Below, piece after piece: positions 21,455 through 58,570 of a stretch of DNA of 64,000 bases. The notes beneath the pieces were generated by a model that was not told where the DNA came from, made no database searches, and saw only the letters and a program-made list of their open reading frames with translations. A program made the translations under genes and the position numbers. The stretch's first letter is position 1. Each line of letters opens with the position of its first letter. Source of the stretch: Macrostomum lignano (taxonomy: Eukaryota); the NCBI GenBank assembly GCA_002269645.1, contig NIVC01000126.1, positions 62,001-126,000 of the forward strand, given 5' to 3'.

Positions 21455-23152
21455 ATGTCGCCCAAATTCAATACGGACAACATCCGGGTTGACCAGATCA
21501 AATGCTACTACGACCCGAAGACCAGCACTAAAGTGACTGAGAAGCCATATTTGGTTCAGTACGAGAGCCAGCATTTCAAGTGCAAAGCGCTCGTTGAACT
21601 TGAAGAGTCAATTGCGGACAGTCATTGGACTATAGGGCTGATTCAAGCCTGCGACCGGATGTATTTGGAGAACCGGTACGGGCAATACGGCAGCTCGTTC
21701 TGGGAGTTCCACCCATTGAAAACGAGACAACATCGAATGGTCAATGACAGCGATGGTAGACAGTATCCGTTCTACAGTCTGACCTCGAGCAAGTGCGAAG
21801 TTACTAAAGGTAAATTTACGCTTAATAAATTGACTTTTACTTGCTTATCGGTCGGTTCGATACAATTACAAAATATTCTCAGGGTCACGTGACCAGTTAA
21901 TTCGGCTACGATCCCAATGCCTTGCGACGGGGCAGGTCACGTGACGACTGGTTAAATTAGCTACGATCCTATGCCTTGCAACGGGTCAGGTCACGTGACG
22001 ACTGGTTAAATTAGCTACGATCCTATGCCTTGCAACGGGTCAGGTCACGTGACGACTGGTTAAATTAGCTACGATCCTATGCCTTGCAACGGGTCAGGTC
22101 ACGTGACGACTGGTTAAATTAGCTACGATCCTATGCCTTGCAACGGGTCAGGTCATGTGACCAGCTAAATCAGCTACGATCCAATGCCTTGCGACGGTTT
22201 AGGTCATGTGGTTGAAGATTGCATTGGCTACCATCTAGTGCTTTAAATAACTTTCGGAGTCACGTGACTTGTCAATTTACAATACCAGTTTATCAGCCCA
22301 TAACGTAGACTAACAAAAATTGCTACAAAACTACCACTCGAAATGGAATTTAAAGGTGTCGTCCGGGACAGCGTCATCAAGCTGCAGTACGCCGACCATT
22401 TCTATCCAACCGTGGCCTGGGACCTGCCCTACTGCAACGGCGTAAAACTAACCGACGTTATTCGCCGGCAAAGCTTCTGGATCTGGCTGGTGGCCATCAA
22501 GAGAGCGGCGCTGCACGCCGATACCGACGTGTTTCACCTGGGCGATGATCAGATTCACATACTGAGCAGCATGCACTGGCGCTACTCGTTGCACATGGAA
22601 TTCGACCCGCACGAGCGCATTGGCAGACGATTGCGAACTCTAACAGATACTCAAATGGAAGCGCCGAGAATCCTGCCAGAAGAGGAGGTCAAACCGATGC
22701 CTCTGTCGGCTGTGCATCCGCCGCACTGCAACGCCGCCCAGTCGCTAATCTGGTATCCGAAACAGCCCGGACAACAGCCGGACATCCTGGTGCCGCCAAA
22801 ACAGACTATTGTACCCTGGGAGCGATGGCTCCGCGACATGATGCCGGGCGTGGCGCCGAACCGGGTGCACCGGCCCAAGGATTTACACCTGTGCCCCAGT
22901 TGGCGAAACGATCGCGATATTGGGCGCTACTGTTCCTGGGACGGCGGCGCCAGACTGCGGCGCTACCAATCCAGCCAGGGTGTGCAGCAGCAGCAGCAGG
23001 CGCCAATAGCGTCAAGCAACAAGACCACTAGTCTGCTGGGCCACCGGGAGCATCATCGGCATGGCAGGCGGCTGGCCTGGAGGCAGGACAGCAACGGGGT
23101 AGCCGATGTCGAACTGAAGCGACGATACTCCGAAGTGGATAGGCAGCACTGA
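21455..23152 (+). CDS. FAM78: FAM78 family protein, 383 aa, 2 exons
   Basis: Exons 21455-21809 and 22356-23152 (phase 1). Motifs WTIGLIQAC, YGQYGSSFWE, NDSDGRQYPFY, DHFYPTVAW, RQSFWIWLVA, HWRYSLHMEFDP, PPHCNAAQSLIWYPK, LVPPK are colinear with FAM78A/B. Confidence 0.92.
21883..22200. repeat. Intronic 54-bp minisatellite carrying the GTCACGTGAC palindrome, about 6 copies
   Basis: Period 54 (CTACGA at 21961 and 22015). Confidence 0.92.
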
Positions 23153-25012: not shown

Positions 25013-28000
25013 TCACCTGCGCTCCAGCAGGTACACTAAGCAGGCGCTATCGCTGTCTAATTTTGGCGCCAACTGCACTGAGCCGGCGGCTACGCCGCAA
25101 AGCTTGCAGCGCAGCCAGGCAACAAAAACTCCGGGACCGTCGGCCTCGGATAGGAAACAATTCAATGGCGGGGCGGAGGCAGCGGTCTCGGCCATAGACA
25201 GCAACGGCTCCAACTGGTCGGGCGAGTAACGACAGTGATAGCTGCGGAGCCGCGTGCCGGCCTCGGACTGGCGACTGTCTAGGGAATGGGAATCAGAGGA
25301 GAAACTTCCTTGCAACGTGGTTTCTAAGGCTGTTGCTACGTGGTTGCTATTTGGTTTCGAGACTGTTGCTACGTTGTTTCTAGGCTTTGCTATGTGGTTT
25401 TTAGACTGTTGCTATGTGGTTGTTATTCGGTTCCTTGACAGTCGCTATGTGGTTGCTGTGTGGTTTCTAGACTGTTGCTACGTGGTTTCTAGGCTGTTGC
25501 TATGTGGTTTCTAGGCTGTTGCTATGTGGTTGCTATTTGGTTTCTAGACAGTCGCTATGTGGTTGCTGTGTGGTTTCTAGACTGTTGCTACGTGGTTTCT
25601 AGGTTGTTGCTATGTGCTTTTTAGACTGTTTCTGTGTTGCTGTTGTTTCTAAACAGTGCTATGTGCTTGCTATAAGTTTCTAGGCTGTTGCTATGTGGTT
25701 TTTAGACTGTTGCTATGTGGTTTCTAGGCTGTTGCACGTGGTTTCTAGGCTGTTGCTACGTGGTTGCTATGCAGTTTTTAGACCGTTGCTACGCGGTTGC
25801 TAGGCTACTAGATACTAGGATGTTGCTATGCAGTATTTTGGTTCCTACATCATATTGCTAAAAAGCAGCTCACCCTCAATAACAGCCGCCGACAGGAGTC
25901 GAGCACAGTAAGCAGGCATCTTCGAATTTTCCAAACGAGGATCATTGTTATCCTCATCCGCGATCAGCTGCCCGTTGCCTATGTACACTCCTTGTTTGCC
26001 GCAGGCGAAGCAGTGTCTTAGACAAGCGCCACTGCTGTTGTTGCTACTACCAATATTGTCATCTGCCGATTCGAGCTTCGGACGTTTAGAATCGCCCTCA
26101 AGTGGATGACAATCGTCAGTCTGATTATCAGAGCCAGCATCATCATCGTCTGTTACAGCATCATCATCGCTGATAAGATTAATTTGCTCAATAACCAGCG
26201 GACTGGCCGACACGGACGATTTTAGCCCGAACAAGCGACGCTTGCCGCTAGGCGTGCCGGCTGAGTCCAGTGGAGCTGGAGACGATGGCAGCGGAGTTGC
26301 TGGGGCAGACCTTGGCGAGTCTAAACCGGAACTAGAAGCTGTTGCTGCTGCAGCTGCCCCTACTGCTGGCGCTTCGATAGAAGCAGCGGCCGCGGCGGCT
26401 GTTCTGGCTGTTACAAACTGAGCGAGTCGGGACTTGACGTCCTGGCGAATGGAGAGCGTTTGCGTTGGCGTTAGGTTTAGAATATAAAGTATGTATTCTG
26501 CTAGTACATGTACGTACTGTAACATGTTTTTCAACTTCCGGTTTCTTTGTGTTACACTAGTAGCTTAGAAATTTACTTTTGGTCTTCGACATTACAGGAA
26601 GATTAGCTACTTTCGGTCTAAAAAATCACAAGAAGTTTAGTTACTTCCGGTCTACGAATTAAAAGGAATTTAATTCAGCTAATAAAGTATGTATTCTGCT
26701 AGTACATGTACGTACTGTAACATGTTTTTCAACTTCCGGTTTCTTTGTGTTACACTAGTAGCTTAGAAATTTACTTTTGGTCTTCGACATTACAGGAAGA
26801 TTAGCTACTTTCGGTCTAAAAAATCACAAGAAGTTCAGCTACTTCCGGTCTACGGGTTTACAGGAAGTCGAGCTACTTCCGGTGTACGGATTTACAAGAA
26901 GTCGAGCTACTTCCGGTGTACGGATTTACAAGAAGTCGAGCTACTTCCGGTGTACGGATTTACAAGAAGTCGAGCTACTTCCGGTGTACGGATTTACAAG
27001 AAGTCGAGCTACTTCCGGTGTACGGATTTACAAGAAGTCGAGCTACTTCCGGTCTACGGATTTACAAGAAGTCGAGCTACTTCCGGTCTACGGATTTACA
27101 AGAAGTTGAGCTACTTCCGGTCTACGGATTTACAAGAAGTCGAGCTACTTCCGGTGTACGGATTTACAAGAAGTCGAGCTACTTCCGGTCTACGGATTTA
27201 CAAGAAGTCGAGCTACTTCCGGTCTACGGATTTACAAGAAGTTGAGCTACTTCCGGTCTACGGATTTACAAGAAGTTGAGCTACTTCCGGTCTACGGATT
27301 TACAAGAAGTTGAGCTACTTCCGGTTCACGGATTTACAAGTTGAGCTACTTCCGGTCTACGGATTTACAAGAAGTTGAGCTACTTCCGGTTCACGGATTT
27401 ACAACAAGTTGAGCTAATTCCGGTTCACGGATTAAAAGGAGGTTGAACGACTTCCGGTTTCCGGATTTTAAGGAAGTGTGGCTATTTAAATAGCAAATTG
27501 AAAGTAACTCAATCACCTGAAAACTATCGCAAGCAGTAGCCCTGTTGCGAACCCACCGGGACAGGCCGGCCAAATACCGGCCAGAACGCTGGGCGAATCG
27601 TTCATCAACAAGCAGCAGGGCGCCCCAGTCGTGCCTGTGCCGTATACACCTGCCCAGGGCTTGGTTCAATGCGCGAAACGCCTGAGTCTCGTACCACTGC
27701 CCACCGTCTAGCAGTGTTCGCTCTTTCGCATGCTGATCATTGTAGCGGCGCTTCAGAGAGACCAGCGTGTCGCGAACGTTGGGAAACGGGATGCCAACGG
27801 TGACGCAGGCGCGGCACTGTTCGTCAGAGAAGTCGATGCCTTCGCTCATCTTGCCGCGGCAGACGGCTAATAATAGAGCCCCGGTACAGCCGTCCCCTTG
27901 TTGCTGATTGGCTGCGGCTGAAATAGGGTAGATTTGATTCTTTCTGACTGGCTGTTGGGTTTTACTTTCATATGCTTCTAGGGGCGACTGTTGGCTGAAT

Positions 28001-30634
28001 CTTATTGGCTTCTGAGGTGGGGTGAAGCGTGACTGAATCTGATTGGCTGCAGAGGTGGGGTGGGCTTGGCAGCTGAGGTAGAGGTGGAACTTGCCTGAAT
28101 CTTATTGGCTGCTGAGATGGGGCGGGGCTTGGGTGAATTTTATTGGCTGCGGAGGTGGGGTGGGCTTGGCTGCTGAGATGGGGTGGGGCTTGGGTGAATC
28201 TTATTGGCTGCGGAGGTGGGGTGGGCTTGGCTGCTGAGGTGGGGGTGGGGCTTGGCTGAATCTTATTGACTGCGGAGGTGGGGTGGGCTTGGCTGCTGAG
28301 GTAGAGGTGGGACTTGCCTGAATCTTATTGGCTGCTGAGATGGGGTGGGGCTTGGGTGAATCTTATTGGCTGCGGAGGTGGGGTGGGCTTGGCTGCTGAG
28401 GTAGAGGTGAGACTTGCGTGAATCAGATTTGCTGCTAAGGTAGGGGTGGGGCATGACTGAATTTGATTGGCTGCTGAAACGGGGTGGAGTTTGGCTGAAT
28501 CTGATCGGCTGCTGGGACGGGGTGGGGCTTGACTGAGTCTGATTGGATGCTGAGACGGAGTGGGACTTGAATATGAAGTTTCAAGCCTAAGAACCACTGC
28601 AAAACAAGAAACCAAACCAAACAAACCTTGCGCCTTGGATGCCTCAATTCTGGCTATAAAAGTTCGCATAGCTTCTTCAAATTCGGCATTGGATCCGCGC
28701 GGCTCAACTACTAGCTCTTTCCGACGCTCCAGCCGCTCCAACAGTCCAGTGTTGGCCCAGCGAGTTCGCATCTTCTCCAAGAACGTGTAGGACGGCATAA
28801 AACAGAGCACGCCATGGGGCACAGTCTCGCACACGCTGGCCAACAGCAGGCCGAGTTCGTCTTGAAATTCGAATCGTTCCGAATTTTGATAATTAGCGCA
28901 CAAAGATCTACCTGTTGGCCCGTTAGCAACGGAACAGACTAGTAGCTGGTCCGGCTTGATCACGTGATTAGCTTCCAATTGCAGGGGGAACGCTTGGCCT
29001 AATTCGCTTTGGAAGCTGGCCATTGGACTCAGAGTGCCGCTAGTGAGAATGACGCAACGAGCAGCAGAGCCGAGGTCGGCAAAAGCAACGGCGGGATTCA
29101 GGCACCAGAAGCTCATGCTCAGAGTCTGCTCAGGGTTGTCCTGCTGGTTCTGACGCTTGGAGAGCCAGCCGGTCTGGTTGAGAGGGTGAAGCACCGCCTT
29201 CACCTGCCAGAGATTGTGTGAGAAAGTGCTACTCTGAATCTTAAAGCCTTACATTGTATGGCGATAGCTTCTATGTGGCTGACGCTGCCTATTTAGGAGG
29301 TATGAGACACTCCATAGAGGTGTGACGTGAGACACTCCATGGAGATGTGAGACACTCCCTAGAGGTGTGACGTGAGACACTCCATAGAGATGTGAGACAC
29401 TCCCTAGAGGTGTGACGTGAAACACTCCATAGAGATGTGAGACACTCCCTAGAGGTGTGACGTAAGACACTCCATAGAGATGTGAGACACTCCATAGAGA
29501 TGTGAGACACTCCCTAGAGGTGTGAGACACTCCCTAGAGGTGTGAGACACTCCCTAGAGGTGTGAGACACTCCCTAGAGGTGTGAGACACTCCCTAGAGG
29601 TGTGACGTGAGACACTCCATAGAGATGTGAGACACTCCCTAGAGGTGTGACGTAAGACACTCCATAGAGATGTGAGACACTCCATAGAGATGTGAGACAC
29701 TCCCTAGAGGTGTGAGACACTCCCTAGAGGTGTGGGACACTCCCTAGAGGTGTGGGACACTCCCTAGAGGTGTGGGACATTCCCTAGAGGTGTGGGACAC
29801 TCCCTAGAGGTGTGGGACACTCCCTAGAGGTGTGAGGCACTCCCTAGAGGTGTGAGGCAGTCCCTAGAGGTGTGTGAGACACTCCATAGAAGTGTGAATC
29901 TCCTTAGATTTGGGTGATACTCCCTAAAAAAAGGTGACAATCCCTTGAGGTGTGAGACACTCTTTAGACTGAATTTGTATCTGATGAACAACAAAAGAAA
30001 ATGGTCGCTCACCTTCTGCAGAGCCACGCGATAATCGTTGGCAAACTTGCAGTTGTCCCTGGTCAGAAAGTGGCAAACCAATAGAAAGGCTTCCAATGCT
30101 TGCACAGTGATCGGATCCAAGGTGACATGGGCGGCCGAGCTGCCTCTAGCAGAGCCGGACTTGTTGCCGCCTTTTCTGCGCACTGCAGTCCAGTTGATGT
30201 CACCGTCAGAGCCGTCAGGATTTCCGCGCTGCGCAGCTGTCCGCTCCTCGATAGTCTGGACAACAGCGCCAAGGTGTTGCGTCAGCGCAACGTGGGAGCC
30301 TTCGGTCAGCTGGATTCCAGCGTAGCGCAGCAGTCCCAGCATCTCCTGGGCGTCCCAGACGTGCTCCATCTGGTTGAAACCGATTGCCCGAAGCTTACTG
30401 GCCGATGTCTGCATCACGTTGAGCAGCTTCTCGACCGTGTCTAATAGGGGAGCCGCGTGCGAGTAGAGCTCCGCGTCTCTGCCTGCGGGATTGCGGCTGA
30501 TTGAGTTCGCTGATGCGGCTCAGGACTTGCTTGGGGCGATGAGAATGCCAGCTAGCTAACTACGAGTACCTAACTCACTAGCTAATTAACTAACTACCTA
30601 ACTACCTAATTAATCAACTAACCAACTAACTAAT

Positions 30635-30670
<36 letters not shown>

Positions 30671-30768
30671 CAACTAACTAACTGACTAACTAACTGACTA
30701 ACAAATTAATCAACTAACCAACTAACTAATTAACTAACTAACTAACTAACTAACCAACTAACTATCAA

Positions 30769-30801
<33 letters not shown>

Positions 30802-33613
30802 GACTAACTAACTAACTAGCCAACCAACTAACTAGCAAGCTAAATAAGCTATAAACTTAACATCTGAAAACCTCTCCCGGAAGCAAGTTTTCAGATGATA
30901 AATCTTACAAATATCGTCCAGGTTCTTCTTGGCGTGCACCAGCTGCTCCTCAGTGATAGTTATCGAAGCGCTCTCCCTGCAGGCGTCTTCGATATTGTGC
31001 GCCTCGTCCAGGATTACAATGTGATTTTTTACGCTAATGCTCATCTGGTAGGGGCGGAGATATTCATAGATTCATTTTTTCTTTATCAAGTCCCAATGCA
31101 TGACAATTATCGGACACCTAAAGATAACTTACATTCTTCCTAATAGTAGGATCAATCAGGTAATTGTAGGGACAAAAGATTAGGTCAGCTTCATCCATAA
31201 GCGCCCTGGCCACGTAGTAAGGACACGGGCTTCTGTCCTTGCGGGCGGTGAGGGCCTGCAGTTGATGATGAGGCAACTGTTTGTTTAACGTTTAAAGACA
31301 CAGACAATTACGACAGACACATTGAGAGAGACTGGAAGACAAACACGACAGACACACTGAGAGAGGCTGGCAGACAAAGACGACAGACACACTGAGAGAG
31401 GCTGGCAGACAAATACGACAGACACACTGAGAGAGGCTGGCAGACAAACATGACAGACACACTGAGAGAGGCTGGCAGACAAATACGACAGACACACTGA
31501 GAGAGGCTGGCAGACAAACATGACAGACACACTGAGAGAGGCTGGCAGACAAACATGACAGACACACTGAGAGAGGCTGGCAGACAAACCTGACAGACAC
31601 ACTGAGAGAGGCTGGCAGACAAACATGACAGACACACTGAGAGAGGCTGGCAGACAAACCTGACAGACACACTGAGAGAGGCTGGCAAACAAACATGACA
31701 GACATACAGAGAAAATGGGTGGATCAAGACATGAAAAGCAAGCACCAGTTAATTGAGCTCACCGTAACAAGATCCTCAATATCCCAGGCAGGTCTGAGTC
31801 CATAATTTTGTCGCACTTTTTGTTGAGTATCGGCGCTAGTCTTTCGAGTATAATAGGCACACGAGGACTCTTTAAGCAGCTCTTTGCAATGCTCGGCTTT
31901 GCTGCGACCGCGATTACCAATGACTGTTGGATGTATGCAGCTGTGCTCGCGACTTGAAAGCACCGTCATGCTGAGTGACGAGTTTTTGGTGGTGACTAAT
32001 TAAAACTTCCTTTGAAAAACTAGCAGTTTTACTAGTAGTAGACTTTATAATACATTGTTGTTACTTTTAAAAAGTTATTTCCCTACATTTCTACTAATAA
32101 GTAGAATACTTAATAAAAGTTCATTATTATTAACTTTGTGCCTGTAGTATACCATTATTTCTACTGTAAGTAGAGTATTAACAAAATCCACCCATTTATA
32201 ATTGCATTTCTGCACTAACAAAAAGTTAAGCCTAAAAACTCACTTAACATCCGCAAAGGCGGTCTTCCTTAATTCTCGAACCAATTGCCCAATCTGCTTG
32301 TGTGTCCTGGAGCCGAAAAATATCTTTGGAATTCTGCGAAGAAGTAAAAAACAAAAATAAAAGTAAAAACTTTTCTTTCAGATTAGTAAAATGAACAAAC
32401 AGTGGGTCAGGCGGATGTACACGACTGACTCTGACTTTTCATAGGGTCAAACAGATCTAAACGACTAAGTCTGACCCTTCTGTGGGTCAGACAGATCTAA
32501 ACGACTAACTCTGACCCTTCTGTGGGTCAGACAGATCTAAACGACTAAGTCTGACCCTTCTGTGGGTCAGACAGATCTAAACGACTAACACTGACCCTTT
32601 TGTGGGTCAGTGGATCAGCGATTGTCAGACATGTACACCTCAACGCCTAGAGGGTTGGCCCGTACAGGCGTGAATCACGTGACAAAGCCTCAAGCCAAAT
32701 TGGTTTACGCACTTCACTTTGTTCGCCGCCTGCTGCTGCCGGTCGGACTCCAGTGCGTCTAGCAGAGCAGCCTGGTGACACACGCAGCCGTTGCACTTGG
32801 CCATTGAAGCTTCGTCTGGCTGCCGCTCCTGCTGTTGACCCGCCTGTACCGCGTGATGACTGCGACAATCTGAGCAGCAATTTTTGTTGTGAATTGATGC
32901 TGCTGCAGTTTGTTTGTCTATCGAAGTCTGATCTTGAGCATCTTCATAATCGGCTTTCGTGTTCGGCTCCTCATCGTTAGTGCCCTGAGACCGATTTTAG
33001 TAAGTGTTATTAATTAATAGGCTTTGTTGAAAGTTGATTCTGTCTTTTAGGTGTCTGTCTTTTAGGTGTCTGTCTTTGGGTTGTCTGTCATGGGTGTCTG
33101 TCTTTCAGGTGTCTGTTTTAGTCTCTCTTTGTCTTTAGGCGTCTGTTTTTGGGTGTCTGTCTCTTGGATGTCTGGCTTTGGGTGTCTGTCTTAGTATTCC
33201 TCTCTGTCTTTGGGTCTCTTTCTTTGGTGTTTGTGTCATTTGGGTGTCTGTATTTTGCCTGTCTTAGTGTTTGTCATTGGGTGAGCAAGGATTCTGTGAG
33301 TGAGCGAGTCTGTGCACCTTGATTAAAATCTTACCGGACTATTTTTATCTTTAAAATGGCGCAACCAAGCCAGACTGGCGCAGAGAAGTGACAGGCTTTT
33401 GCCACTGCCAGTTGGCGATTCAACTAAACAGCATTGGCTGGCTAAGCAGCTCTGCACAACCCGGCTCATCATGCTTAGTTGCGAAGGATACGCGCTGTAA
33501 GGAAATGGCACTTCAACACCCTGCAGACTGTAGATCTTCTGCTGTTTCTGCTCCTGCTGACTGCTGTCTTTGCCAGCCAGCTTGGCAGTTTGACTGCGAA
33601 ACCAGTTTTGAGC
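25013..33613 (-). CDS. BRIP1: Fanconi anemia group J / BRIP1 Fe-S DEAH helicase, >=1129 aa, 11 exons, start codon not found
   Basis: Exons (-) 33613-33335, 32984-32713, 32333-32244, 31970-31763, 31255-31133, 31044-30909, 30482-30013, 29203-28627, 27917-27517, 26441-25874, 25278-25013 (3390 nt, phases match). Motifs [42 protein letters not shown]...HC...[68 protein letters not shown]. Confidence 0.95.
25315..25830. repeat. Degenerate minisatellite (TGTTGCTATGTGGTTTCTAG[A/G]C)n, intronic
   Basis: Read directly. Confidence 0.85.
26484..26854. repeat. Direct duplication of a ~170-bp block, period 198 bp
   Basis: ATAAAGTATGTATTCTGCTAG... starts at 26484 and 26682; nearly identical. Confidence 0.9.
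26830..27470. repeat. 34-bp minisatellite (GAGCTACTTCCGGTGTACGGATTTACAAGAAGTC)n, about 18 copies
   Basis: Read directly; FANCJ intron. Confidence 0.96.
27940..28562. repeat. G-rich degenerate minisatellite (GAATCTTATTGGCTGCGGAGGTGGGGTGGGCTTGGCTGCTGAG...)n
   Basis: Read directly; FANCJ intron 28626-27918. Confidence 0.9.
29300..29960. repeat. 20/25-bp minisatellite (GTGAGACACTCCCTAGAGGT)n
   Basis: Read directly; FANCJ intron. Confidence 0.93.
30555..30835. repeat. (CTAA)n microsatellite
   Basis: Read directly; FANCJ intron. Confidence 0.95.
31300..31705. repeat. 39-bp minisatellite (GACAGACACACTGAGAGAGGCTGGCAGACAAACAT...)n
   Basis: Read directly; FANCJ intron. Confidence 0.93.
32420..32615. 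repeat. 40-bp hairpin minisatellite (TCTGACCCTTCTGTGGGTCAGACAGATCTAAACGACTAA[G/C])n, about 5 copies
   Basis: Period 40; TCTGACCC/GGGTCAGA perfect 8-bp stem. Confidence 0.9.
33045..33280. repeat. Degenerate (GTGTCTGTCTTT)-like low-complexity tract
   Basis: Read directly. Confidence 0.7.
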
Positions 33614-33881
33614 CTGGAGCAAAGTTTTACAGAAACATAAATGCTAAAATTGTATATTTTATTAAACAGGCAACTTGAAGGCAACAGCCAATTAATTACA
33701 TTGGTGTCTGTCTTTCTGTGTCTATCTTGGTACCTATCTTTGCATGCCTGTCTTTAGAAATTTAGACAGTGCTTTTGTGTTCAATAACAAGGTTTCTAAA
33801 AATCGTTTTTGGTAGAGCGGTTTGGGAGTCCATAGCGAAGTAATTTGTACACACACACACACACACACACACACAATCACG

Positions 33882-36800
33882 CACCGGGCACTTGTTGGTA
33901 CGGTATACAATGGTGGGCACTTATTTTGCAATTTTTTTTGACACACGAAAACACACACATACACACAGTGCAATGACCTATTAAGTATTTTTAGCATTTA
34001 AATGATGAAAAAAAGCATACATTGAAATAAAAAAGCACGTCCCATACTAATAGTATGATCTATTGAAAGTGAAGGAATAGCATATCATCGTGTAACTATA
34101 TTGTCCTCAGTCGAGCGAATTCAGCATTACTTGAAATACAAGTCTTCGTTGAAGCCAATCCACATGAAGGAAAAACTAGTTACAAGCAGTCTATTTACCT
34201 TTACCTTTACTAATACGCTATAATGCTGTACGCAATATGCCTGACTAATATGAATAAAAAATTCAATTACACTTGCGCTTAGGAAAAAACCTAAAATTGA
34301 CAGTGAAACTGAAAAACTGAAACGCAAAGATTAGTTAAGCAGATTAAACAAAAAATTCCGGTCGAGCGAGAAAACAGGAGTCTCGTTATTTAGAGCACTC
34401 TGGCATCCAGCATTACGCTTGCAGATTATAAATTAGCTGCTCTCCTGAGTTCGAAGCTGACAGGTCCGTTGCAGTCGGCATCGATTGAGTCGACTGCCAA
34501 TTTAGTCAATGGGTTTCGTTTCTTCTTTTCACTGGAACCTGTGGTGGGATTAGCAAAAGATCGATTTCGCATATCTGTTTAGTGATTTCAAGGACGACAA
34601 AATCATTCTTCTCTGCATGTCAGCTCCAGAAGATGCTAGTTTGCTTGCAGCTTTCTGTAGGAGCATTCTACTTTAGTAAAGTGTACCCATTCTAAAATAA
34701 GCTGTTTTTAATATGTCCCAACAAGTCTCTGTGCAGTGTGTCATCCGTTTGCCCATCAATTTGTTCTGGAGCCCTTTATTAATTGAGTTCTTTAGGTGAC
34801 TTAACAAATGCGGAAAAAACTAGACACACACACACAGTGGCCCAACACTTCGTGTCCCAATAATTGCTAGGAAAAATGCACTGCAGTGTTTAAGCATCTC
34901 CTCTGAGGGGCCCTTGCATGCATAGCTATAGAATCTGCTAAGACCCGATCTGAGAGTTAAAAGTACAAAAAGTTATAACGCTTCTAGACACGAAAACGAA
35001 TGCAGCCACAGCATGAACTAACCTTTTATTGAAGCTTCTGCTTTAAATACTTTGATGCTGTGAAGCATTCTGGCATCTAGCATTACTCTCGTAGACTATT
35101 AGCTGCTCTCCTGAGTTCGAAGCTGACAGGTCCGTTGCAGTCGGCATCGATTGAGTCGACTGCCAATTTAGTCAATGGGTTTCGTTTCTTCTTTTCACTG
35201 GAACCTGTGGTGGGATTAGCAAAAGATCGATTTCGCATATCTGTTTAGTGATTTCAAGGACGACAAAATCATTCTTCTCTGCATGTCAGCTCCAGAAGAT
35301 GCTAGTTTGCTTGCAGCTTTCTGTAGGAGCATTCTACTTTAGTAAAGTGTACCCATTCTAAAATAAGCTGTTTTTAATATGTCCCAACAAGTCTCTGTGC
35401 AGTGTGTCATCCGTTTGCCCATCAATTTGTTCTGGAGCCCTTTATTAATTGAGTTCTTTAGGTGACTTAACAAATGCGGAAAAAACTAGACACACACACA
35501 CAGTGGCCCAACACTTCGTGTCCCAATAATTGCTAGGAAAAATGCACTGCAGTGTTTAAGCATCTCCTCTGAGGGGCCCTTGCATGCATAGCTATAGAAT
35601 CTGCTAAGACCCGATCTGAGAGTTAAAAGTACAAAAAGTTATAACGCTTCTAGACACGAAAACGAATGCAGCCACAGCATGAACTAACCTTTTATTGAAG
35701 CTTCTGCTTTAAAGACTTTGATGCTGTGAAGCATTCTGGCATCTAGCATTACTCTCGTAGACTATTAGCTGCTCTCCTGAGTTCGAAGCTGACAGGTCCG
35801 TTGCAGTCGGCATCGATTGAGTCGACTGCCAATTTAGTCAATGGGTTTCGTTTCTTCTTTTCACTGGAACCTGTGGTGGGATTAGCAAAAGATCGATTTC
35901 GCATATCTGTTTAGTGATTTCAAGGACGACAAAATCATTCTTCTCTGCATGTCAGCTCCAGAAGATGCTAGTTTGTTTGCAGCTTTCTGTAGGAGCATTC
36001 TACTTTAGTAAAGTGTACCCATTCTAAAATAAGCTGTTTTTAATATGTCCCAACAAGTCTCTGTGCAGTGTGTCATCCGTTTGCCCATCAATTTGTTCTG
36101 GAGCCCTTTATTAATTGAGTTCTTTAGGTGACTTAACAAATGCGGAAAAAACTAGACACACACACACAGTGGCCCAACACTTCGTGTCCCAATAATTGCT
36201 AGGAAAAATGCACTGCAGTGTTTAAGCATCTCCTCTGAGGGGCCCTTGCATGCATAGCTATAGAATCTGCTAAGACCCGATCTGAGAGTTAAAAGTACAA
36301 AAAGTTATAACGCTTCTAGACACGAAAACGAATGCAGCCACAGCATGAACTAACCTTTTATTGAAGCTTCTGCTTTAAAGACTTTGATGCTGTGAAGCAT
36401 TCTGGCATCTAGCATTACTCTCGTAGACTATTAGCTGCTCTCCTGAGTTCGAAGCTGACAGGTCAGTTGCAGTCGGCATCGATTGAGTCGACTGCCAATT
36501 TAGTCAATGGGTTTCGTTTCTTCTTTTCACTGGAACCTGTGGTGGGATTAGCAAAAGATCGATTTCGCATATCTGTTTAGTGATTTCAAGGACGACAAAA
36601 TCATTCTTCTCTGCATGTCAGCTCCAGAAGATGCTAGTTTGCTTGCAGCTTTCTGTAGGAGCATTCTACTTTAGTAAAGTGTACCCATTCTAAAATAAGC
36701 TGTTTTTAATATGTCCCAACAAGTCTCTGTGCAGTGTGTCATCCGTTTGCCCATCAATTTGTTCTGGAGCCCTTTATTAATTGAGTTCTTTAGGTGACTT

Positions 36801-39800
36801 AACAAATGCGGAAAAAACTAGACACACACACACAGTGGCCCAACACTTCGTGTCCCAATAATTGCTAGGAAAAATGCACTGCAGTGTTTAAGCATCTCCT
36901 CTGAGGGGCCCTTGCATGCATAGCTATAGAATCTGCTAAGACCCGATCTGAGAGTTAAAAGTACAAAAAGTTATAACGCTTCTAGACACGAAAACGAATG
37001 CAGCCACAGCATGAACTAACCTTTTATTGAAGCTTCTGCTTTAAAGACTTTGATGCTGTGAAGCATTCTGGCATCTAGCATTACTCTCGTAGACTATTAG
37101 CTGCTCTCCTGAGTTCGAAGCTGACAGGTCCGTTGCAGTCGGCATCGATTGAGTCGACTGCCAATTTAGTCAATGGGTTTCGTTTCTTCTTTTCACTGGA
37201 ACCTGTGGTGGGATTAGCAAAAGATCGATTTCGCATATCTGTTTAGTGATTTCAAGGACGACAAAATCATTCTTCTCTGCATGTCAGCTCCAGAAGATGC
37301 TAGTTTGCTTGCAGCTTTCTGTAGGAGCATTCTACTTTAGTAAAGTGTACCCATTCTAAAATAAGCTGTTTTTAATATGTCCCAACAAGTCTCTGTGCAG
37401 TGTGTCATCCGTTTGCCCATCAATTTGTTCTGGAGCCCTTTATTAATTGAGTTCTTTAGGTGACTTAACAAATGCGGAAAAAACTAGACACACACACACA
37501 GTGGCCCAACACTTCGTGTCCCAATAATTGCTAGGAAAAATGCACTGCAGTGTTTAAGCATCTCCTCTGAGGGGCCCTTGCATGCATAGCTATAGAATCT
37601 GCTAAGACCCGATCTGAGAGTTAAAAGTACAAAAAGTTATAACGCTTCTAGACACGAAAACGAATGCAGCCACAGCATGAACTAACCTTTTATTGAAGCT
37701 TCTGCTTTAAATACTTTGATGCTGTGAAGCATTCTGGCATCTAGCATTACTCTCGTAGACTATTAGCTGCTCTCCTGAGTTCGAAGCTGACAGGTCCGTT
37801 GCAGTCGGCATCGATTGAGTCGACTGCCAATTTAGTCAATGGGTTTCGTTTCTTCTTTTCACTGGAACCTGTGGTGGGATTAGCAAAAGATCGATTTCGC
37901 ATATCTGTTTAGTGATTTCAAGGACGACAAAATCATTCTTCTCTGCATGTCAGCTCCAGAAGATGCTAGTTTGCTTGCAGCTTTCTGTAGGAGCATTCTA
38001 CTTTAGTAAAGTGTACCCATTCTAAAATAAGCTGTTTTTAATATGTCCCAACAAGTCTCTGTGCAGTGTGTCATCCGTTTGCCCATCAATTTGTTCTGGA
38101 GCCCTTTATTAATTGAGTTCTTTAGGTGACTTAACAAATGCGGAAAAAACTAGACACACACACACAGTGGCCCAACACTTCGTGTCCCAATAATTGCTAG
38201 GAAAAATGCACTGCAGTGTTTAAGCATCTCCTCTGAGGGGCCCTTGCATGCATAGCTATAGAATCTGCTAAGACCCGATCTGAGAGTTAAAAGTACAAAA
38301 AGTTATAACGCTTCTAGACACGAAAACGAATGCAGCCACAGCATGAACTAACCTTTTATTGAAGCTTCTGCTTTAAAGACTTTGATGCTGTGAAGCATTC
38401 TGGCATCTAGCATTACTCTCGTAGACTATTAGCTGCTCTCCTGAGTTCGAAGCTGACAGGTCCGTTGCAGTCGGCATCGATTGAGTCGACTGCCAATTTA
38501 GTCAATGGGTTTCGTTTCTTCTTTTCACTGGAACCTGTGGTGGGATTAGCAAAAGATCGATTTCGCATATCTGTTTAGTGATTTCAAGGACGACAAAATC
38601 ATTCTTCTCTGCATGTCAGCTCCAGAAGATGCTAGTTTGCTTGCAGCTTTCTGTAGGAGCATTCTACTTTAGTAAAGTGTACCCATTCTAAAATAAGCTG
38701 TTTTTAATATGTCCCAACAAGTCTCTGTGCAGTGTGTCATCCGTTTGCCCATCAATTTGTTCTGGAGCCCTTTATTAATTGAGTTCTTTAGGTGACTTAA
38801 CAAATGCGGAAAAAACTAGACACACACACACAGTGGCCCAACACTTCGTGTCCCAATAATTGCTAGGAAAAATGCACTGCAGTGTTTAAGCATCTCCTCT
38901 GAGGGGCCCTTGCATGCATAGCTATAGAATCTGCTAAGACCCGATCTGAGAGTTAAAAGTACAAAAAGTTATAACGCTTCTAGACACGAAAACGAATGCA
39001 GCCACAGCATGAACTAACCTTTTATTGAAGCTTCTGCTTTAAATACTTTGATGCTGTGAAGCATTCTGGCATCTAGCATTACTCTCGTAGACTATTAGCT
39101 GCTCTCCTGAGTTCGAAGCTGACAGGTCCGTTGCAGTCGGCATCGATTGAGTCGACTGCCAATTTAGTCAATGGGTTTCGTTTCTTCTTTTCACTGGAAC
39201 CTGTGGTGGGATTAGCAAAAGATCGATTTCGCATATCTGTTTAGTGATTTCAAGGACGACAAAATCATTCTTCTCTGCATGTCAGCTCCAGAAGATGCTA
39301 GTTTGCTTGCAGCTTTCTGTAGGAGCATTCTACTTTAGTAAAGTGTACCCATTCTAAAATAAGCTGTTTTTAATATGTCCCAACAAGTCTCTGTGCAGTG
39401 TGTCATCCGTTTGCCCATCAATTTGTTCTGGAGCCCTTTATTAATTGAGTTCTTTAGGTGACTTAACAAATGCGGAAAAAACTAGACACACACACACAGT
39501 GGCCCAACACTTCGTGTCCCAATAATTGCTAGGAAAAATGCACTGCAGTGTTTAAGCATCTCCTCTGAGGGGCCCTTGCATGCATAGCTATAGAATCTGC
39601 TAAGACCCGATCTGAGAGTTAAAAGTACAAAAAGTTATAACGCTTCTAGACACGAAAACGAATGCAGCCACAGCATGAACTAACCTTTTATTGAAGCTTC
39701 TGCTTTAAATACTTTGATGCTGTGAAGCATTCTGGCATCTAGCATTACTCTCGTAGACTATTAGCTGCTCTCCTGAGTTCGAAGCTGACAGGTCCGTTGC

Positions 39801-42158
39801 AGTCGGCATCGATTGAGTCGACTGCCAATTTAGTCAATGGGTTTCGTTTCTTCTTTTCACTGGAACCTGTGGTGGGATTAGCAAAAGATCGATTTCGCAT
39901 ATCTGTTTAGTGATTTCAAGGACGACAAAATCATTCTTCTCTGCATGTCAGCTCCAGAAGATGCTAGTTTGCTTGCAGCTTTCTGTAGGAGCATTCTACT
40001 TTAGTAAAGTGTACCCATTCTAAAATAAGCTGTTTTAATATGTCCCAACAAGTCTCTGTGCAGTGTGTCATCCGTTTGCCCATCAATTTGTTCTGGAGCC
40101 CTTTATTAATTGAGTTCTTTAGGTGACTTAACAAATGCGGAAAAAACTAGACACACACACACAGTGGCCCAACACTTCGTGTCCCAATAATTGCTAGGAA
40201 AAATGCACTGCAGTGTTTAAGCATCTCCTCTGAGGGGCCCTTGCATGCATAGCTATAGAATCTGCTAAGACCCGATCTGAGAGTTAAAAGTACAAAAAGT
40301 TATAACGCTTCTAGACACGAAAACGAATGCAGCCACAGCATGAACTAACCTTTTATTGAAGCTTCTGCTTTAAATACTTTGATGCTGTGAAGCATTCTGG
40401 CATCTAGCATTACTCTCGTAGACTATTAGCTGCTCTCCTGAGTTCGAAGCTGACAGGTCCGTTGCAGTCGGCATCGATTGAGTCGACTGCCAATTTAGTC
40501 AATGGGTTTCGTTTCTTCTTTTCACTGGAACCTGTGGTGGGATTAGCAAAAGATCGATTTCGCATATCTGTTTAGTGATTTCAAGGACGACAAAATCATT
40601 CTTCTCTGCATGTCAGCTCCAGAAGATGCTAGTTTGCTTGCAGCTTTCTGTAGGAGCATTCTACTTTAGTAAAGTGTACCCATTCTAAAATAAGCTGTTT
40701 TTAATATGTCCCAACAAGTCTCTGTGCAGTGTGTCATCCGTTTGCCCATCAATTTGTTCTGGAGCCCTTTATTAATTGAGTTCTTTAGGTGACTTAACAA
40801 ATGCGGAAAAAACTAGACACACACACACAGTGGCCCAACACTTCGTGTCCCAATAATTGCTAGGAAAAATGCACTGCAGTGTTTAAGCATCTCCTCTGAG
40901 GGGCCCTTGCATGCATAGCTATAGAATCTGCTAAGACCCGATCTGAGAGTTAAAAGTACAAAACTTATAATTTTTGTGGTTGGACACGTAGGCTATTGAG
41001 TGTCAATGGATTCAGACGAAATGTCAAGTTTTACTCAAAGCTTTTACAGCTTACTGGTTAAAGTCGACGGATCCTTTGGCAATTGCGCCACATGGCAGTT
41101 GATCAAAGGTGATATACCTGAAGTAAAGGTAGGTACTGCTTAGCAGGAGCAGTATTTTTTATAGCATTTAAATATAAATGCTTCTTGTTTCCGACAAAGT
41201 TTTTTAATACCACTTACATGTTTCTCGCTGTGCCATTCCATGCTGTTCTTTCCATACCATGGTGACTCGGGTGCCATGGCAGAGGCAGAGTTGACCATTG
41301 ATTTCAGCATAGCGAGTACATGCCAATTTAGTTTTACCGTACGTTTGCGGGGTGGCGTCAATAATAGACCAAAATAAAAGTACACTTAACTAGCAAGGGG
41401 ACTCTGGTAAATTGGAGCCATGTACACAGGGGGGTAGGGCTTAGTCCTAACATGTACGGGGTAAGTCCTAATATGAGTGGGCTTTTGTAAACGACACTCT
41501 AGCACACAGTCCCAACAATTTATAGAATATCGAATGCGCGCAGCAGTCAATAGCATGAGTCCTAACAAGAGTGGGCTGTTGTATTCAACACTGCAACACT
41601 GTCCTAACAATTTAGTTCGTGTAGAGTACTGATGCCCATCACAGTCAGAAGTACATGTAAGCCCTTGTCATTTCTTTAGGTTTATCTCCATCCAGAACCA
41701 TCCTTTGACAATAAAATACCCTTAAAAGTGTTTTGCTATGCTTTGCTTTGTATGTATTTTAATGTATGCTATGTATTTACGTCTTGTAACAAAGACTGCA
41801 GCAAATGAATGCGCTTGAAATCTACTATTAGTAAAAATATGAGAAAAAACCAATAAAAATATGCGGGAGCAGATTAGCCATTTCAGTGTCCCAATAGTGA
41901 TTTGGTCGAATTTTGTATCATTTTTCCTTATTGGGACGCCAGTTTTTGCTTAATTATGGACTCAGAAAGTAAAATTATTAAAAATGAGTTGCACCATCAA
42001 AAAGAGGCTGTCGAGCTGAATCCATAGAGTATTTTTTTGAGCTGCTATTGTAAGTTTTTTGGAAGTGTTGGACGGACTTGATGGGACAGTCCCAACATTT
42101 TTTTTGGCCCAACAGTGCGGGTCCCGTTGTACGCGTATGGCCCAACAAATGCCCCGTG
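33882..42158. mobile_element. Possible non-autonomous CMC/EnSpm-like element with CAC...GTG termini, inserted in (CA)n
   Basis: Left CACCGGGCACTTGTTGG vs right (reverse complement) CACGGGGCATTTGTTGG, 15/17; CG on both outer sides; (CA)n on both flanks; clustered CC[C/T]AA[C/T]A motifs at 41440-42150. No transposase seen. Confidence 0.4.
34395..40965. repeat. Tandem array of about 10 near-identical 666-bp units
   Basis: Marker TCTCCTGAG at 34441, 35107, 35773, 36439, 37105, 37771, 38437, 39103, 39769, 40434 (last step 665). Confidence 0.98.
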
Positions 42159-42159
42159 C

Positions 42160-42194
<35 letters not shown>

Positions 42195-43397
42195 TTTTTG
42201 ATTTTTATAGGTAGAGATATTCAAACCATATAAATACATTCCTCAAGTGCAATGCAATGAAGTAATGAAGTATATATTCTGAAAAACTATATAATCTATT
42301 AATCTATATATAAGTAATTTTTCAGAATATATTTATCTATCCTAAGAATATGCTATTTAAAAACAATTTGAAAGACAAGATAGTTTTTTCTTATTTAATA
42401 TTAAATACAAGTGGCTCTGAGAAAAAATTAATAATATATTATGCATTAATTGCTTTTGAGGTTGATTTTTTCATTTTATTATATGATAACTTCAACAAAT
42501 TGACTTCATTAGTCCTAGAATAGCTATTCTTACTGTGGATGGAATATAAGTGGTCAGAAATCTTGGCTCCACTCCATCCTACTAACCAAAAGGCAAAAAC
42601 TTGACTTTATTGACTTTCAAGGCTTTAAAGAGAACTCATTTTTGTAAAGAAATTTCAAGTTGAAAGCAAGCGCTAGGTAGGAATTATCTACACTTGCACA
42701 AAAACTCAGATTAGCTTTATAAGCATTTCTGCTTTTTTCTATAAACACTACCATGTTTTCTGACACATCAGTAGCACAAATTCAAAATTAATTAAAATAT
42801 CTAAAAATAGAGATGAAAAATTATTTTCATTGATATGTGAGGTTGTGTAATATTACCCCTGACCTTTGTGCACATTTCTTGCTGCAGCTACTGAATAAAA
42901 AAGATATCAACATGATTTTAAATTTGTTTTCTTTGTGACAAAATTTCCTTTCATTTGACACCATGGCATAAATTTCATGGCTCCATTGAAGAGCTATGTT
43001 AGACATTTCAGGAACTTTTGGGATACCCTTTATACCAAGAAAGCCATAACTTTAAATGTCTAAATAGATAAAATGTCTAAAATGCCTAGATCTATATTGT
43101 TTACTTATTTTCAATTGGTAGTAATTAAGGAAATAGGTGCTATAAAGATGCACTATAATTATTCCCTTTGTCTTTATTAGCTTTAAGCTTAATAAGTTTA
43201 TTAAGTCTTAATCTATAGTTTATTATTATCAGTTTAGTAGGAAACCATTGCTAGTAGTAATGCTATGCAAAAATTGGAATAAATATGCAAAAATGTATTT
43301 TACTTTGTGCTAGGCCACTTGCTTTGTCTATTAGTGGATAAATATCTATATTATAGGTTAGACTATAATAAAAGCTAATAAAGCCAAAGGCCAAAAG

Positions 43398-44284
43398 CAG
43401 TATTGGGCACCATTAATGAAAATCTTAACTTCCGTTAATAGCAAAAGCATTAGCGTTAAAACAAAAAAATCTTTACTTTTTAACTCCTAATTTCCTTAAG
43501 TTAACTGAAAGTTAACTAATAATTGTTAATAAGCATTAATCCATTAAAGCTAACACAGAAAATACGGAAATCTTGCACGTTTTTTCCAAAACAGACTTCG
43601 TATTGCACGTCTTTGCTATTCCATCTTTTTAGCGAAAAACAGAGGTCACCTAAGTGATTTGAAAGCTAAAAAAGTAATAAATAATCATTTTAAAAACTTG
43701 CATATATAATACTACTAAAAGTAAAGCATATGGTAAAAAAGTAACTTATTTTATTTGAAACTTAAAAGCTAATAATGAGAAATTCATAATTAAATACGCA
43801 TAGGAAGGTTGTTTCAGTACCATTAGCAGGCGCAGCAGAAAGTTGCGAAAGATTGGGACAGAAGTGAATCAAAGCGATCAATGCTCACGCGCAAGAAATA
43901 AAGTTTTACACTATTTTAATTCATTTTTTTAAAGTTTATTTGTAAGAAGTTGTTTATTACATGTACGTCTGTATTATCATTGTCATAAATAAAGAGATTA
44001 TATTTAGGCATTTAGGTAAGCTCAAATACATTTGTAATGTTTAATCTTCTTGTAAGACTTCTATTTTTCGTTCCTTTTTTGCGTCTTTGGTCATTGACAT
44101 AGACACTACCATTAATGATGAATTTATCGTTAATTCACAAAATTTTTAATGCAAATTTGTTAATCTGTTAGTTCAAAAAAATCTTAATGACAGTCCGTTA
44201 ACGACAACATTAATGAAAAATCTTAATGCTTATTTACGCTTATTAATGGATTAACACTTATTAACGGACTGGTGCCCAACACTG
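43398..44284. mobile_element. hAT-superfamily MITE, 887 bp
   Basis: TIRs CAGTATTGGGCACCA / TGGTGCCCAACACTG (14/15); perfect 8-bp TSD GCCAAAAG at 43390-43397 and 44285-44292; no ORF. Confidence 0.88.
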
Positions 44285-45419
44285 GCCAAAAGGAATGATT
44301 ACAGGTCTAATATAATATAATTTAATTATACCATATATTTCCCTAATTACAACCAATAGGAAATGAGTGAAATTTATCAGGCTTATTATTATCTAGGCCT
44401 ATTTAGACATAAACTAGGGCCTAGGCTTAATATAATTTTAAACAAAAAACCTAAGCCTAGGACAACTCTAGTCGTCTAAACCCTAGAAATACTGTACAAA
44501 ACTCTAGGCCTAACTTAATTTGTCATGTCACACTTATATGATAATAGGTATTTATTAAATTGAAATTATACCTGCCATAGGCATAGGCATAGATATTATT
44601 GTGTGTTACACTTGACTACACTTATTTATTGATCGCATACACTCAGAACGAGCCCAACATGATGCTGCATTGTCTCTTCAAGTTTTTGTCTTTTTAAATT
44701 TAATGTCCTTATAATTAAAAGCTATTAGCCTACCTAAGCCTAGCCTAGAACTGAACTAGGACTGGTGGTCGTGGGCGATCACATCAGGCATGTTGCAGCA
44801 AGTTAAAAATTTTACCCTATAAAAACAAATACTTAAATTTTTTATTATATTCGCATGATTACCTTATAGAAGGAATGATTTTTGTTGAGTTACCCGAAAA
44901 ATATATCGGTAAGGACAATCAGAACTTTAAAGTGACTCTAAATATGCTTGGTCAGCTGTAATCATGGCGCAGATTTGAACGCTGATTTGTTATCGTGTTT
45001 ATATAAAAACTAACTTTTTTAGCGATTGGCCCAGTGGATAATAATAATCAATCATCAAATACTGAATAATTTATAATCAGTGGAATCTAAGCTATAAAAA
45101 TTTTTCATCTATGTTATGGCATAGGTGTACACCTACCTACACCAAGTGCTCCTAGGGAAATGTTAAGCCTAAATCATAATATAGGCTTAAATATAGACAA
45201 TGCACTTTGAGTTTGTTCTTCCTAAAAATCTTGCCTATATAGCTTTTTTATTAGGTCATGCAATTTAGTTGTTATTTTTTTGCTTATTATTTTTTGTTTT
45301 TTTTTACAGAAAATTCATTTTTAAACTGTTGAAGTTTTACTATAGATTGATTGAAAGTGATTTAATTTAAATCAATAAATTTAAAGCTACAAAGCTATTT
45401 GTAGTGTTACTTTTTATTA

Positions 45420-46100: not shown

Positions 46101-46350
46101 TTATGAAAATTAACACTACTTTTGGGATAGCCCTTGTATAAAGAACATTCTTATCTATTAGGTGTATTCTTTATTTCTTTAGTTTTTTTATTTTATTCTA
46201 TATCAATCAAAAATGTCCACTTGACCACAAGGCATACTTGAGCAATATAAGCTATAGCTAATAGCTTCTTTTTAGGTTTAATATTTGCCTTAAAACTCAT
46301 GTAAATGATTTTAATTTACTACCTATACTTTTATTTTTTCATTGCTGATA

Positions 46351-48174: not shown

Positions 48175-48297
48175 GCTGCATGACACAATATCCAGTTATG
48201 CGTGATAAGTTGACACTTTCGTCACCTAATCCTAAGTGTGTTAGCACTAATTTTGTTTAACATTTTGTATATCGATTGACTCTACATTGACCCTACG

Positions 48298-58533: not shown

Positions 58534-58570
58534 GCAGCCAATCTTGCAGCCAATCTCCATGCAGCCAATC
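58534..58570 (+). promoter_or_regulatory. Three tandem CCAAT boxes (GCAGCCAATC x3) between the divergent CYP and KH-like genes
   Basis: Motifs read directly; function inferred. Confidence 0.35.

Follow-up and report, generated by a model that had tools for sequence, protein, structure and literature searches.

A Macrostomum lignano FANCJ gene whose start codon may be supplied by the trans-spliced leader

The DNA analysed here (the window, a stretch of 64,000 nucleotides) is 100% identical to scaffold NIVC01000126.1 of the Macrostomum lignano assembly Mlig_3_7 (GCA_002269645.1), so that the flatworm host on which the original prediction depended is indeed the host; window position plus 62,000 gives scaffold position. 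The product of an intronless P450 gene in the window matches an M. lignano protein at 99% identity. On the minus strand, tblastn of homologues and exon joining placed a FANCJ gene at 27517..33613, the nine exons of which (33613-33335, 32984-32713, 32333-32244, 31970-31763, 31255-31133, 31044-30909, 30482-30013, 29203-28627 and 27917-27517) join in frame and free of stops into an intact product of 852 aa, the model covering exons 1–9, with the C-terminal exons below 27517. All nine acceptors are CAG and the splice sites are canonical. The product contains the Pfam domains DEAD_2 (PF06733, 169 bits, residues 190–359) and Helicase_C_2 (PF13307, 166 bits, residues 648–843), and scores 415 bits against the NCBIfam model TIGR00604 (rad3). 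Its best relative of solved structure is human FANCJ (9ej9_A; E 1.2e-199, 669 bits), with CHL1 and XPD at about 1e-47, these two being the sister helicases compared, and its named database relatives, those of Schistosoma included, are called 'Fanconi anemia group J protein'. The Schistosoma FANCJ models are fragments that lack N-termini and are uninformative on the start. All four cysteines of the Fe-S cluster domain align (HSCIH, EHCKELL, SSCAYY and SPCPYY, against HTCVH, EKCMELL, KSCYFY and KACPYY in human FANCJ), as do the Q motif (YPSQ) and Walker A (ESPTGSGKS), which align to residues 7–72 of the human protein. Judged by its sequence, the locus is an intact orthologue of FANCJ/BRIP1, an XPD-family Fe-S DNA helicase, with all helicase motifs present.

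The first recognisable coding exon (33335..33613, minus strand; 93 codons, phase 0 at both ends, donor CCG/GTAAGA) holds a 26-codon N-terminal extension followed by the Q motif and Walker A. On the minus strand its opening reads ...tttctgtaaaactttgctCCAG/GCT CAA AAC TGG TTT CGC..., with AG at 33615-33614 and the first base at 33613 (the boundary 33613/33614 corresponds to 95,613/95,614 of NIVC01000126.1), which confirms that the exon opens in phase 0 with GCT CAA AAC TGG at the CAG acceptor 33616-33614, as had been predicted. Across the 2343 homologues found for this exon, conservation begins at residue 25–30. The Q-motif block, 19 residues encoded by 33479..33535 (minus strand) and kept in all relatives, lies upstream of the first genomic Met, since the first in-frame ATG ATG (M48 and M49; 33467..33472, minus strand) comes past Q45 of that motif. 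Between the acceptor and M48, ATG is absent in all frames, and initiation at M48 would remove the Q motif. An intact gene of 852 aa that has kept every helicase motif needs a start upstream of M48. There, however, the frame is closed by an in-frame TAG (33644..33646, minus strand), and the earlier claim that the 5'-most conserved exon has no genomic start codon is thus upheld; the TAG had been put about 40 nt upstream of the exon, whereas the distance is 31–33 nt. The AG of this TAG is itself a possible alternative acceptor (ttttAG/CAT), which is also in phase 0. A run of 58 codons without ATG is unremarkable by chance (p ~0.4), and the telling point is the conserved N-terminus ahead of the first Met rather than the absence of ATG itself.

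The sequence preceding the exon carries a splice acceptor, CTCCAG (33614..33619, minus strand), that fits the published M. lignano trans-splice acceptor motif [T/C]TNCAG (PMC8629364) and is the proposed leader-joining site. Between 33739 and 33536 there are 22 AGs, among which CTCCAG is the sole match to this motif and has the top pyrimidine content (12/18); a [T/C]TNCAG in phase 0 would be expected by chance 0.1 times in the 36 open codons. The 26 codons from the acceptor to the conserved block (33536..33613, minus strand) have a frame-0 codon-usage log-likelihood of 19.2 bits, a value typical of true coding chunks and reached by none of 3693 same-length stop-free non-coding chunks, with the reservation that the score was trained on just ~2000 codons and may be flattered by a Q/K-rich N-terminus. 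By the same score the 10 codons between the TAG and the CAG acceptor are non-coding; the coding signal turns on at the acceptor, at 33613.

M. lignano has a single spliced leader of 35 nt, CGGTCTCTTACTGCGAAGACTCAATTTATTGCATG, the 3' end of which (...TTGCATG) is an ATG (PMC8629364), so that the AUG-ended leader that the original prediction needed in the host does exist. The likely use of this final ATG as a start codon has already been noted by Macrostomum workers (PMC10468722). Trans-splicing affects 30–39% of M. lignano genes, 45% of those conserved in human, 85% of neoblast (stem-cell) genes and 96.8% of conserved neoblast genes. For FANCD2 of M. lignano the PMC5816591 supplement gives the flags TRANSSPLICED and Neoblast; BRIP1/FANCJ was not found in the portions covered of the M. 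lignano, S. mansoni and parasitic-flatworm supplementary tables.

Our working hypothesis is that the FANCJ pre-mRNA is trans-spliced, the 35-nt AUG-ended leader being joined to the CAG acceptor 33616-33614. Removal of the outron would take away the in-frame TAG as well as an out-of-frame AUG (ATG TTT CTG TAA; 33636..33638, minus strand) that lies upstream of the acceptor. The mature mRNA would read ...UUGCAUG/GCUCAA (junction TTTATTGCATG/GCTCAAAACTGGTTTCGC), in which the leader-terminal AUG would stand directly in frame with GCU CAA AAC and be the sole AUG upstream of the Q motif. Translation from it would give M-A-Q-N-W-F..., and full-length FANCJ would depend on trans-splicing. When the leader is joined in silico at 33613, MAQNWF... 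results and the frame stays open through exon 1 and on through exons 1–9; the –3 position of the leader AUG, a U, is a poor one. We infer, for the joining of the leader and for the use of its AUG alike, that the start codon of FANCJ is most likely that of the leader. Sequence and literature agree with what the original prediction of leader-AUG initiation presupposed, but a candidate cis exon with an ATG, in the right phase, exists upstream.

This exon bears on the view that FANCJ is cis-spliced, a short upstream ATG exon being joined to 33613 over a long intron that holds a repeat array. The best candidate (41218..41310, minus strand; MLKSMVNSASAMAPESPWYGKNSMEWHSEKH) lies 7.6 kb upstream, beyond the array, and offers an open phase-0 frame that begins with ATG and runs to a CAT/GTAAGT donor, so that the product would read ...MEWHSEKH/AQNWF.... 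The claim that there is no phase-0 ATG exon nearby therefore stands for the first 7.6 kb, and fails beyond it. The codon score of the candidate is mildly coding-like at 9.6 bits, a value matched by just 2% of stop-free non-coding chunks, yet it is at the 17th percentile of coding chunks and the frame-specific score is weak. An ATG frame is met by chance at about 1 in 4 donor-like sites and simulated sequence yields ~5 candidates per 12.7 kb, so that a single candidate is no evidence; moreover, it is situated inside a block marked by a strand-specific 9-mer common to the array, and its peptide is unlike any FANCJ N-terminus compared. Without the young array the cis intron would measure ~1 kb, little short of the mean intron of the species (1.1–1.4 kb), and 55% of human-conserved M. 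lignano genes are not trans-spliced, both of which favour a cis exon. Phase 0 at 33613, on the other hand, would be a coincidence with a 1-in-3 chance if a cis exon were used, whereas initiation at the leader AUG requires it, and this counts for the leader AUG. By the rule of Conrad 1993, as quoted in later work, a trans-spliced gene has no cis donor further upstream in its transcript. At FANCJ, GT[AG]AG is absent from the 7.6 kb upstream of the acceptor (the proximal 813 bp and the array), one good donor occurs at 41217, and 4 such donors are observed against 22 expected in 12.7 kb upstream, although GT[AG]AG misses 35% of the cis donors of M. lignano, so that weaker donors closer to the exon may have escaped it. 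Taking these points together, we consider a cis-spliced first exon unlikely.

The repeat itself, described in the original prediction as an 8-kb element just upstream, is a block of about that extent (~7.8 kb), made up not of one element but of a tandem array and a motif-sharing zone that reaches 42.15 kb. The array (34429..~40980, ~6.6 kb) has 9.8 copies of a 666-bp unit, 99.2–99.5% identical, and starts 813 bp upstream of the acceptor. The zone (41444..42147, minus strand) has 7 copies of the 9-mer TGTTRGGMC, which is found elsewhere in the window only in the array units, twice in each; its 27 matches, against 1.5 expected, are all on the minus strand and all within 34715-42147. Two further identities for the block were considered and not adopted. 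It is not an array of spliced-leader RNA genes, as the window has no match to the leader at <=3 mismatches and no Rfam family, and there is no ground to call it a transposon with terminal inverted repeats, as its flanks have in common just (AC)n microsatellites.

Alternatively, this copy of FANCJ might be defective or decaying, its start lost by point mutation (for example of an ancestral ATG to the present AAG at 33540-33538, which precedes the conserved Tyr by two codons) or its 5' end disrupted by the repeat block, with a paralogue supplying the function. The M. lignano genome is highly duplicated (79% of BUSCO genes) and this copy could be damaged, a point against initiation at the leader AUG; a paralogous scaffold exists that is 95–98% identical, the array is young (units 99.3% identical), no FANCJ protein is annotated for M. 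lignano, and many FANCJ orthologues start just 1–10 residues ahead of the conserved block. Against such decay stand the nine intact exons, with 852 codons and canonical splice sites, and the frame-0 coding score of the 26 codons ahead of the conserved block, which is unexpected of a former 5' UTR. The protein set contains neither FANCJ paralogue, and the gap in annotation is therefore not peculiar to the copy on NIVC01000126.1. For these reasons we regard a defective copy as improbable. The paralogous scaffold, reached through the P450 gene, ends at window-equivalent 45.5 kb, and look-ups with the contiguous ORFs of the F-box and FAM78-like genes gave no paralogous 5' region. The paralogous locus is on NIVC01000892.1.

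A start at a non-AUG codon of an mRNA that is not trans-spliced would be another way to preserve the Q motif. In-frame near-cognate codons are present between the TAG and the Q motif (e.g. CTG at 33580-33578 or TTG at 33622-33620) and non-canonical starts are documented in spliced-leader organisms, but no supporting context was found around these codons, ribosomes scanning an unspliced leader would be intercepted by the upstream out-of-frame AUG (33638), and this is a far rarer route than either splicing route. We judge it very improbable indeed.

No M. lignano FANCJ protein was found in a set of 5.8 billion proteins in which the P450 of the same scaffold is present; neither searches of that set nor an exhaustive search of the representatives gave anything closer than 55–60% identity. 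The absence would be consistent with annotation in which the leader is trimmed off and the start codon lost with it. A metagenome scan with the first 26 nt of the FANCJ exon gave 0 matches. Logan transcript contigs of P450 relatives (SRR28338164/5) were considered as M. lignano transcripts and rejected, being without the leader and from another organism.

Initiation at the leader AUG is not new: it has been known in flatworms since 2006 and is documented for schistosomes and tapeworms. Leader-AUG initiation in schistosomes was described by Cheng, Cohen, Ndegwa and Davis (J Biol Chem 2006), as quoted in PMC9851317 and PMC12582326, and the figures for S. mansoni, quoted in PMC9851317, are 28% of trans-spliced mRNAs with the leader AUG in frame and >40 cDNAs that need it. 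Like the schistosome mRNAs, the proposed FANCJ mRNA would have an AUG-ended leader, in frame and stop-free, and has no genomic AUG that preserves the conserved N-terminus; unlike theirs, which is built on cDNAs and translation assays, the case for M. lignano FANCJ is built on genomic sequence. Schistosomes are parasitic, whereas M. lignano is a free-living macrostomorph, and FANCJ was not found among the schistosome leader-AUG examples in the portions of the literature located. Of 187 Echinococcus granulosus clusters that bear the leader, 143 are full-length when the leader ATG is taken as the start (PMC3510090), and some of the clusters agree with the N-termini of their orthologues only if the leader AUG is used, which is the argument made here for FANCJ. 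The E. granulosus study is transcript-based, whereas the case of FANCJ is drawn from the genome, and an alternative ATG is often within 5 codons in E. granulosus, whereas the next ATG of M. lignano FANCJ is 47 codons downstream.

A further comparison is with those conserved genes and neoblast genes of M. lignano itself that are trans-spliced (Ustyantsev and Berezikov 2021, PMC8629364; Wudarski 2017, PMC5730564), with which FANCJ would share species, leader and acceptor motif, although those papers do not deal with initiation at the leader AUG. FANCJ belongs to the conserved genome-maintenance class, which is overwhelmingly trans-spliced in M. lignano, FANCD2 (PMC5816591 supplement) being an example. 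The slORFs reported with slORFfinder (PMC9851317) embody the same general idea, that a leader supplies the start codon, but the ribosome footprints that demonstrate them come from nematodes, Oikopleura and trypanosomes, with non-AUG codons as most of the starts, and flatworm ribosome profiling was not included.

If initiation at the leader AUG is correct, full-length FANCJ in the regeneration model M. lignano would be made from trans-spliced mRNA only, and the gene would provide, beyond the parasitic flatworms, a clean, conserved and functionally constrained case in which initiation at the leader AUG is obligate; knowledge of the mechanism itself would be unchanged. Wherever the leader is disregarded or trimmed, gene finders and transcript pipelines would miss or truncate such genes, and in knock-in, reporter and rescue constructs for them an ATG must be supplied or the acceptor kept. 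It is tempting to speculate, and we do so with more doubt than conviction, that M. lignano harbours a hidden class of conserved genes, FANCJ among them, without any genomic start codon, which would yield proteins only after trans-splicing, tie stem-cell genome maintenance to leader supply and be silently dropped or truncated by leader-trimming pipelines. The existence of such a class would explain why FANCJ is missing from public protein sets despite an intact gene on an annotated scaffold.

The FANCJ coding blocks, located by tblastn with database relatives, lie on the minus strand between 33.6 and 27.5 kb of the window. Joined in frame, nine exons give an uninterrupted reading frame of 852 residues; each exon is preceded by a CAG acceptor, and most donors read GTAAG or GTGAG. 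The product contains DEAD_2 and Helicase_C_2 domains, also matches the rad3 subfamily model, and has human FANCJ (9ej9_A) as its best solved relative (E 1.2e-199, with CHL1 and XPD at ~1e-47); in this alignment residue 27 of the Macrostomum lignano protein pairs with residue 7 of the human one, and the four Fe-S cysteines likewise match. Judged by its sequence the gene looks functional, and a start codon is therefore needed upstream of 33535. Exon 1 (33613–33335, minus strand) encodes 93 residues and ends at a GTAAGA donor. Upstream its frame is closed by an in-frame TAG (33646–33644, minus strand), no ATG occurs in any frame from the acceptor to M48, and the first in-frame ATGs, M48 and M49 (33472–33467, minus strand), come directly after the Q-motif glutamine; an out-of-frame ATG lies upstream of the acceptor at 33638 (minus strand). 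The original prediction described this exon correctly as to its acceptor, the closed frame upstream and a first methionine only past the Q motif, except that the TAG lies about 30 nt upstream and not about 40. When exon 1 was searched exhaustively, 2343 relatives emerged, in which similarity starts at exon residue 25–30; because the relatives' own N-termini reach 2–45 residues past the start of similarity, an N-terminal extension of 26 residues is normal, whereas starting past the Q motif is not. The window belongs to assembly Mlig_3_7 (GCA_002269645.1): DNA of its scaffold NIVC01000126.1 is 100% identical to window 46215–64000, and record coordinates there are window positions plus 62,000. 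A paralogous scaffold, NIVC01000892.1, shows 95–98% identity, and we regard it as improbable that the FANCJ described here is a damaged duplicate copy.

Across the acceptor the minus strand reads aattttAGcatttatgtttctgtaaaactttgctCCAG followed by GCT CAA AAC TGG TTT CGC. The acceptor, CTCCAG at 33619–33614, fits [T/C]TNCAG, the motif that ranks first among trans-splice acceptors of M. lignano (PMC8629364). All AGs from ~140 nt upstream of it to the conserved block were compared, and among the 22 with full upstream context it had the most pyrimidine-rich tract (12/18) and was the sole motif match; by chance, about 0.1 phase-0 matches would fall within the 36 open codons. Phase 0 is obligatory if the spliced leader supplies the AUG, whereas it has a one-in-three chance if a cis exon does so. 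The original prediction presupposed a flatworm host with an AUG-ended leader, and the host is M. lignano, whose single leader, the 35-nt CGGTCTCTTACTGCGAAGACTCAATTTATTGCATG, has AUG at its 3′ end (PMC8629364). Joined at 33613, this leader would give ...UUGCAUG GCU CAA... and a product beginning MAQNWF, in frame and open through exon 1. A codon-usage score trained on about 2000 codons from four genes in the window gives 19.2 bits for the 26 codons that follow the acceptor, a value typical of true coding chunks and attained by none of 3693 equal-length stop-free non-coding chunks, to be read with the small training set and the Gln- and Lys-rich composition of the scored stretch in mind; the 10 codons from the TAG to the acceptor score as non-coding. 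The coding signal thus begins at the acceptor, which counts against a lost start codon close to the conserved block and speaks for 33619–33614 over the alternative ttttAG at 33644, likewise in phase 0. On balance, we consider it probable that the leader AUG initiates FANCJ translation; initiation at a non-AUG codon is very improbable, and some further explanation takes up the little that remains.

Upstream of FANCJ, 9.8 copies of a 666-bp unit, 99.2–99.5% identical, form a young tandem array from 34429 to about 40980, beginning 813 bp from the acceptor. The window has 27 copies of the 9-mer TGTTRGGMC where 1.5 are expected, all on the minus strand and within 34715–42147, with two per 666-bp unit and seven at 41444–42147; as this 9-mer is common to both, the array seems to form a single block of ~7.8 kb with the 1.2 kb beyond it. 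The 8-kb repeat noted originally was thus close in size and incompletely described, being a 666-bp tandem array with an adjoining zone. The block (34429–40980, 41444–42147) contains no ORFs, no Rfam matches and almost no GT[AG]AG donors, and candidate identities are a satellite, a composite mobile element or a regulatory array. An array of leader-RNA genes was rejected, as the window has no match to the leader with up to 3 mismatches and no Rfam family. (AC)13 microsatellites lie at both outer edges of the block (33849–33875 and 42164–42192). Between the block and an F-box gene, the region 42000–46000 is AT-rich (GC 0.30 vs 0.40–0.50 elsewhere) and has no ORF of at least 90 aa.

There is no same-strand gene upstream of FANCJ, the next gene being the divergent F-box gene at 46351; on this arrangement FANCJ would be trans-spliced as a monocistronic gene and not as a downstream operon member. 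It seems unlikely that an upstream cis exon supplies the ATG. The minus strand of 33617–46341 has four GT[AG]AG donors against 22 expected, none of them in the array or in the 813 bp between it and the acceptor. One of the four, CAT/GTAAGT at 41217, ends a candidate phase-0 ATG exon at 41310–41218 (minus strand; MLKSMVNSASAMAPESPWYGKNSMEWHSEKH), to which the intron would be of ordinary length were the young array absent. In simulated sequence about five candidates of this kind turn up in 12.7 kb, so finding one does not speak for it; the candidate exon has an ambiguous coding score and sits within the repeat block.

Initiation at the leader AUG has precedent. Every flatworm leader reported so far has ATG at its 3′ end (PMC12582326). 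In S. mansoni 28% of trans-spliced mRNAs carry the leader AUG in frame, and more than 40 cDNAs depend on it (Cheng et al. 2006, as quoted in PMC9851317). Of 187 leader-bearing clusters in E. granulosus, 143 are full-length when read from the leader ATG, a trait conserved among parasitic flatworms (PMC3510090), and the Macrostomum genome authors have already named the leader's final ATG a likely translation start (PMC10468722). We found no report naming FANCJ as such a case, nor any study of how M. lignano uses the leader AUG. The idea is sound, and FANCJ would add one more case to this known class, the mechanism being established already. In M. lignano 30–39% of genes are trans-spliced, and the share rises to 45% among human-conserved genes, 85% among neoblast genes and 96.8% among those neoblast genes that are conserved; FANCD2 carries the flags TRANSSPLICED and Neoblast in a published table.

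No M. lignano FANCJ protein was found in a collection of 5.8 billion proteins, although the P450 of the same annotated scaffold is on record, nor a transcript in the collections searched, and BRIP1 did not appear in the examined parts of the published tables; joining at 33613 is for this reason one that we infer from sequence. The missing protein may reflect a gap in annotation that arises when trimming of the leader leaves a gene without its ATG. An intact conserved gene without a public protein, on an annotated scaffold, may signal a systematic gap for borrowed start codons, and this incidental finding may matter more than the FANCJ case itself.

The P450, CYP2-like, intronless and 519 aa long (56215–57774, minus strand; Pfam p450, 332 bits), exactly matches an annotated gene on NIVC01000126.1 and shares 99% identity with an M. 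lignano protein and with the copy carried by the paralogous scaffold. Gene annotation differs between the two scaffold copies at the F-box locus: the F-box-like gene (46351–47355, plus strand) has no gene call on NIVC01000126.1, where the called neighbour is a 417-aa MFS_1 product (window ~49383–55322), and its counterpart on the paralogous scaffold is called as a 610-aa gene (17753–20770 of L001, the stretch fetched from it). Convergent with FANCJ is a two-exon gene of 383 aa (21455–21809 and 22356–23152, plus strand), which has no Pfam match, which we take to resemble vertebrate FAM78, and whose intron carries a ~60-nt tandem repeat. The 400-aa ORFs on both strands of 16666–18020 come from a 15-nt tandem repeat and match Pentapeptide and Extensin Pfam models; these were rejected as genes, being repeat artefacts. 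Minisatellites with periods of about 15, 40, 35 and 4–8 nt, and longer, occupy almost every FANCJ intron (33039–33255, 32402–32610, 31231–31782, 30539–30884, ~29250–29800 and ~27970–28620), and several yield long spurious ORFs, such as the amino-acid repeats that extend the frame of exon 8.
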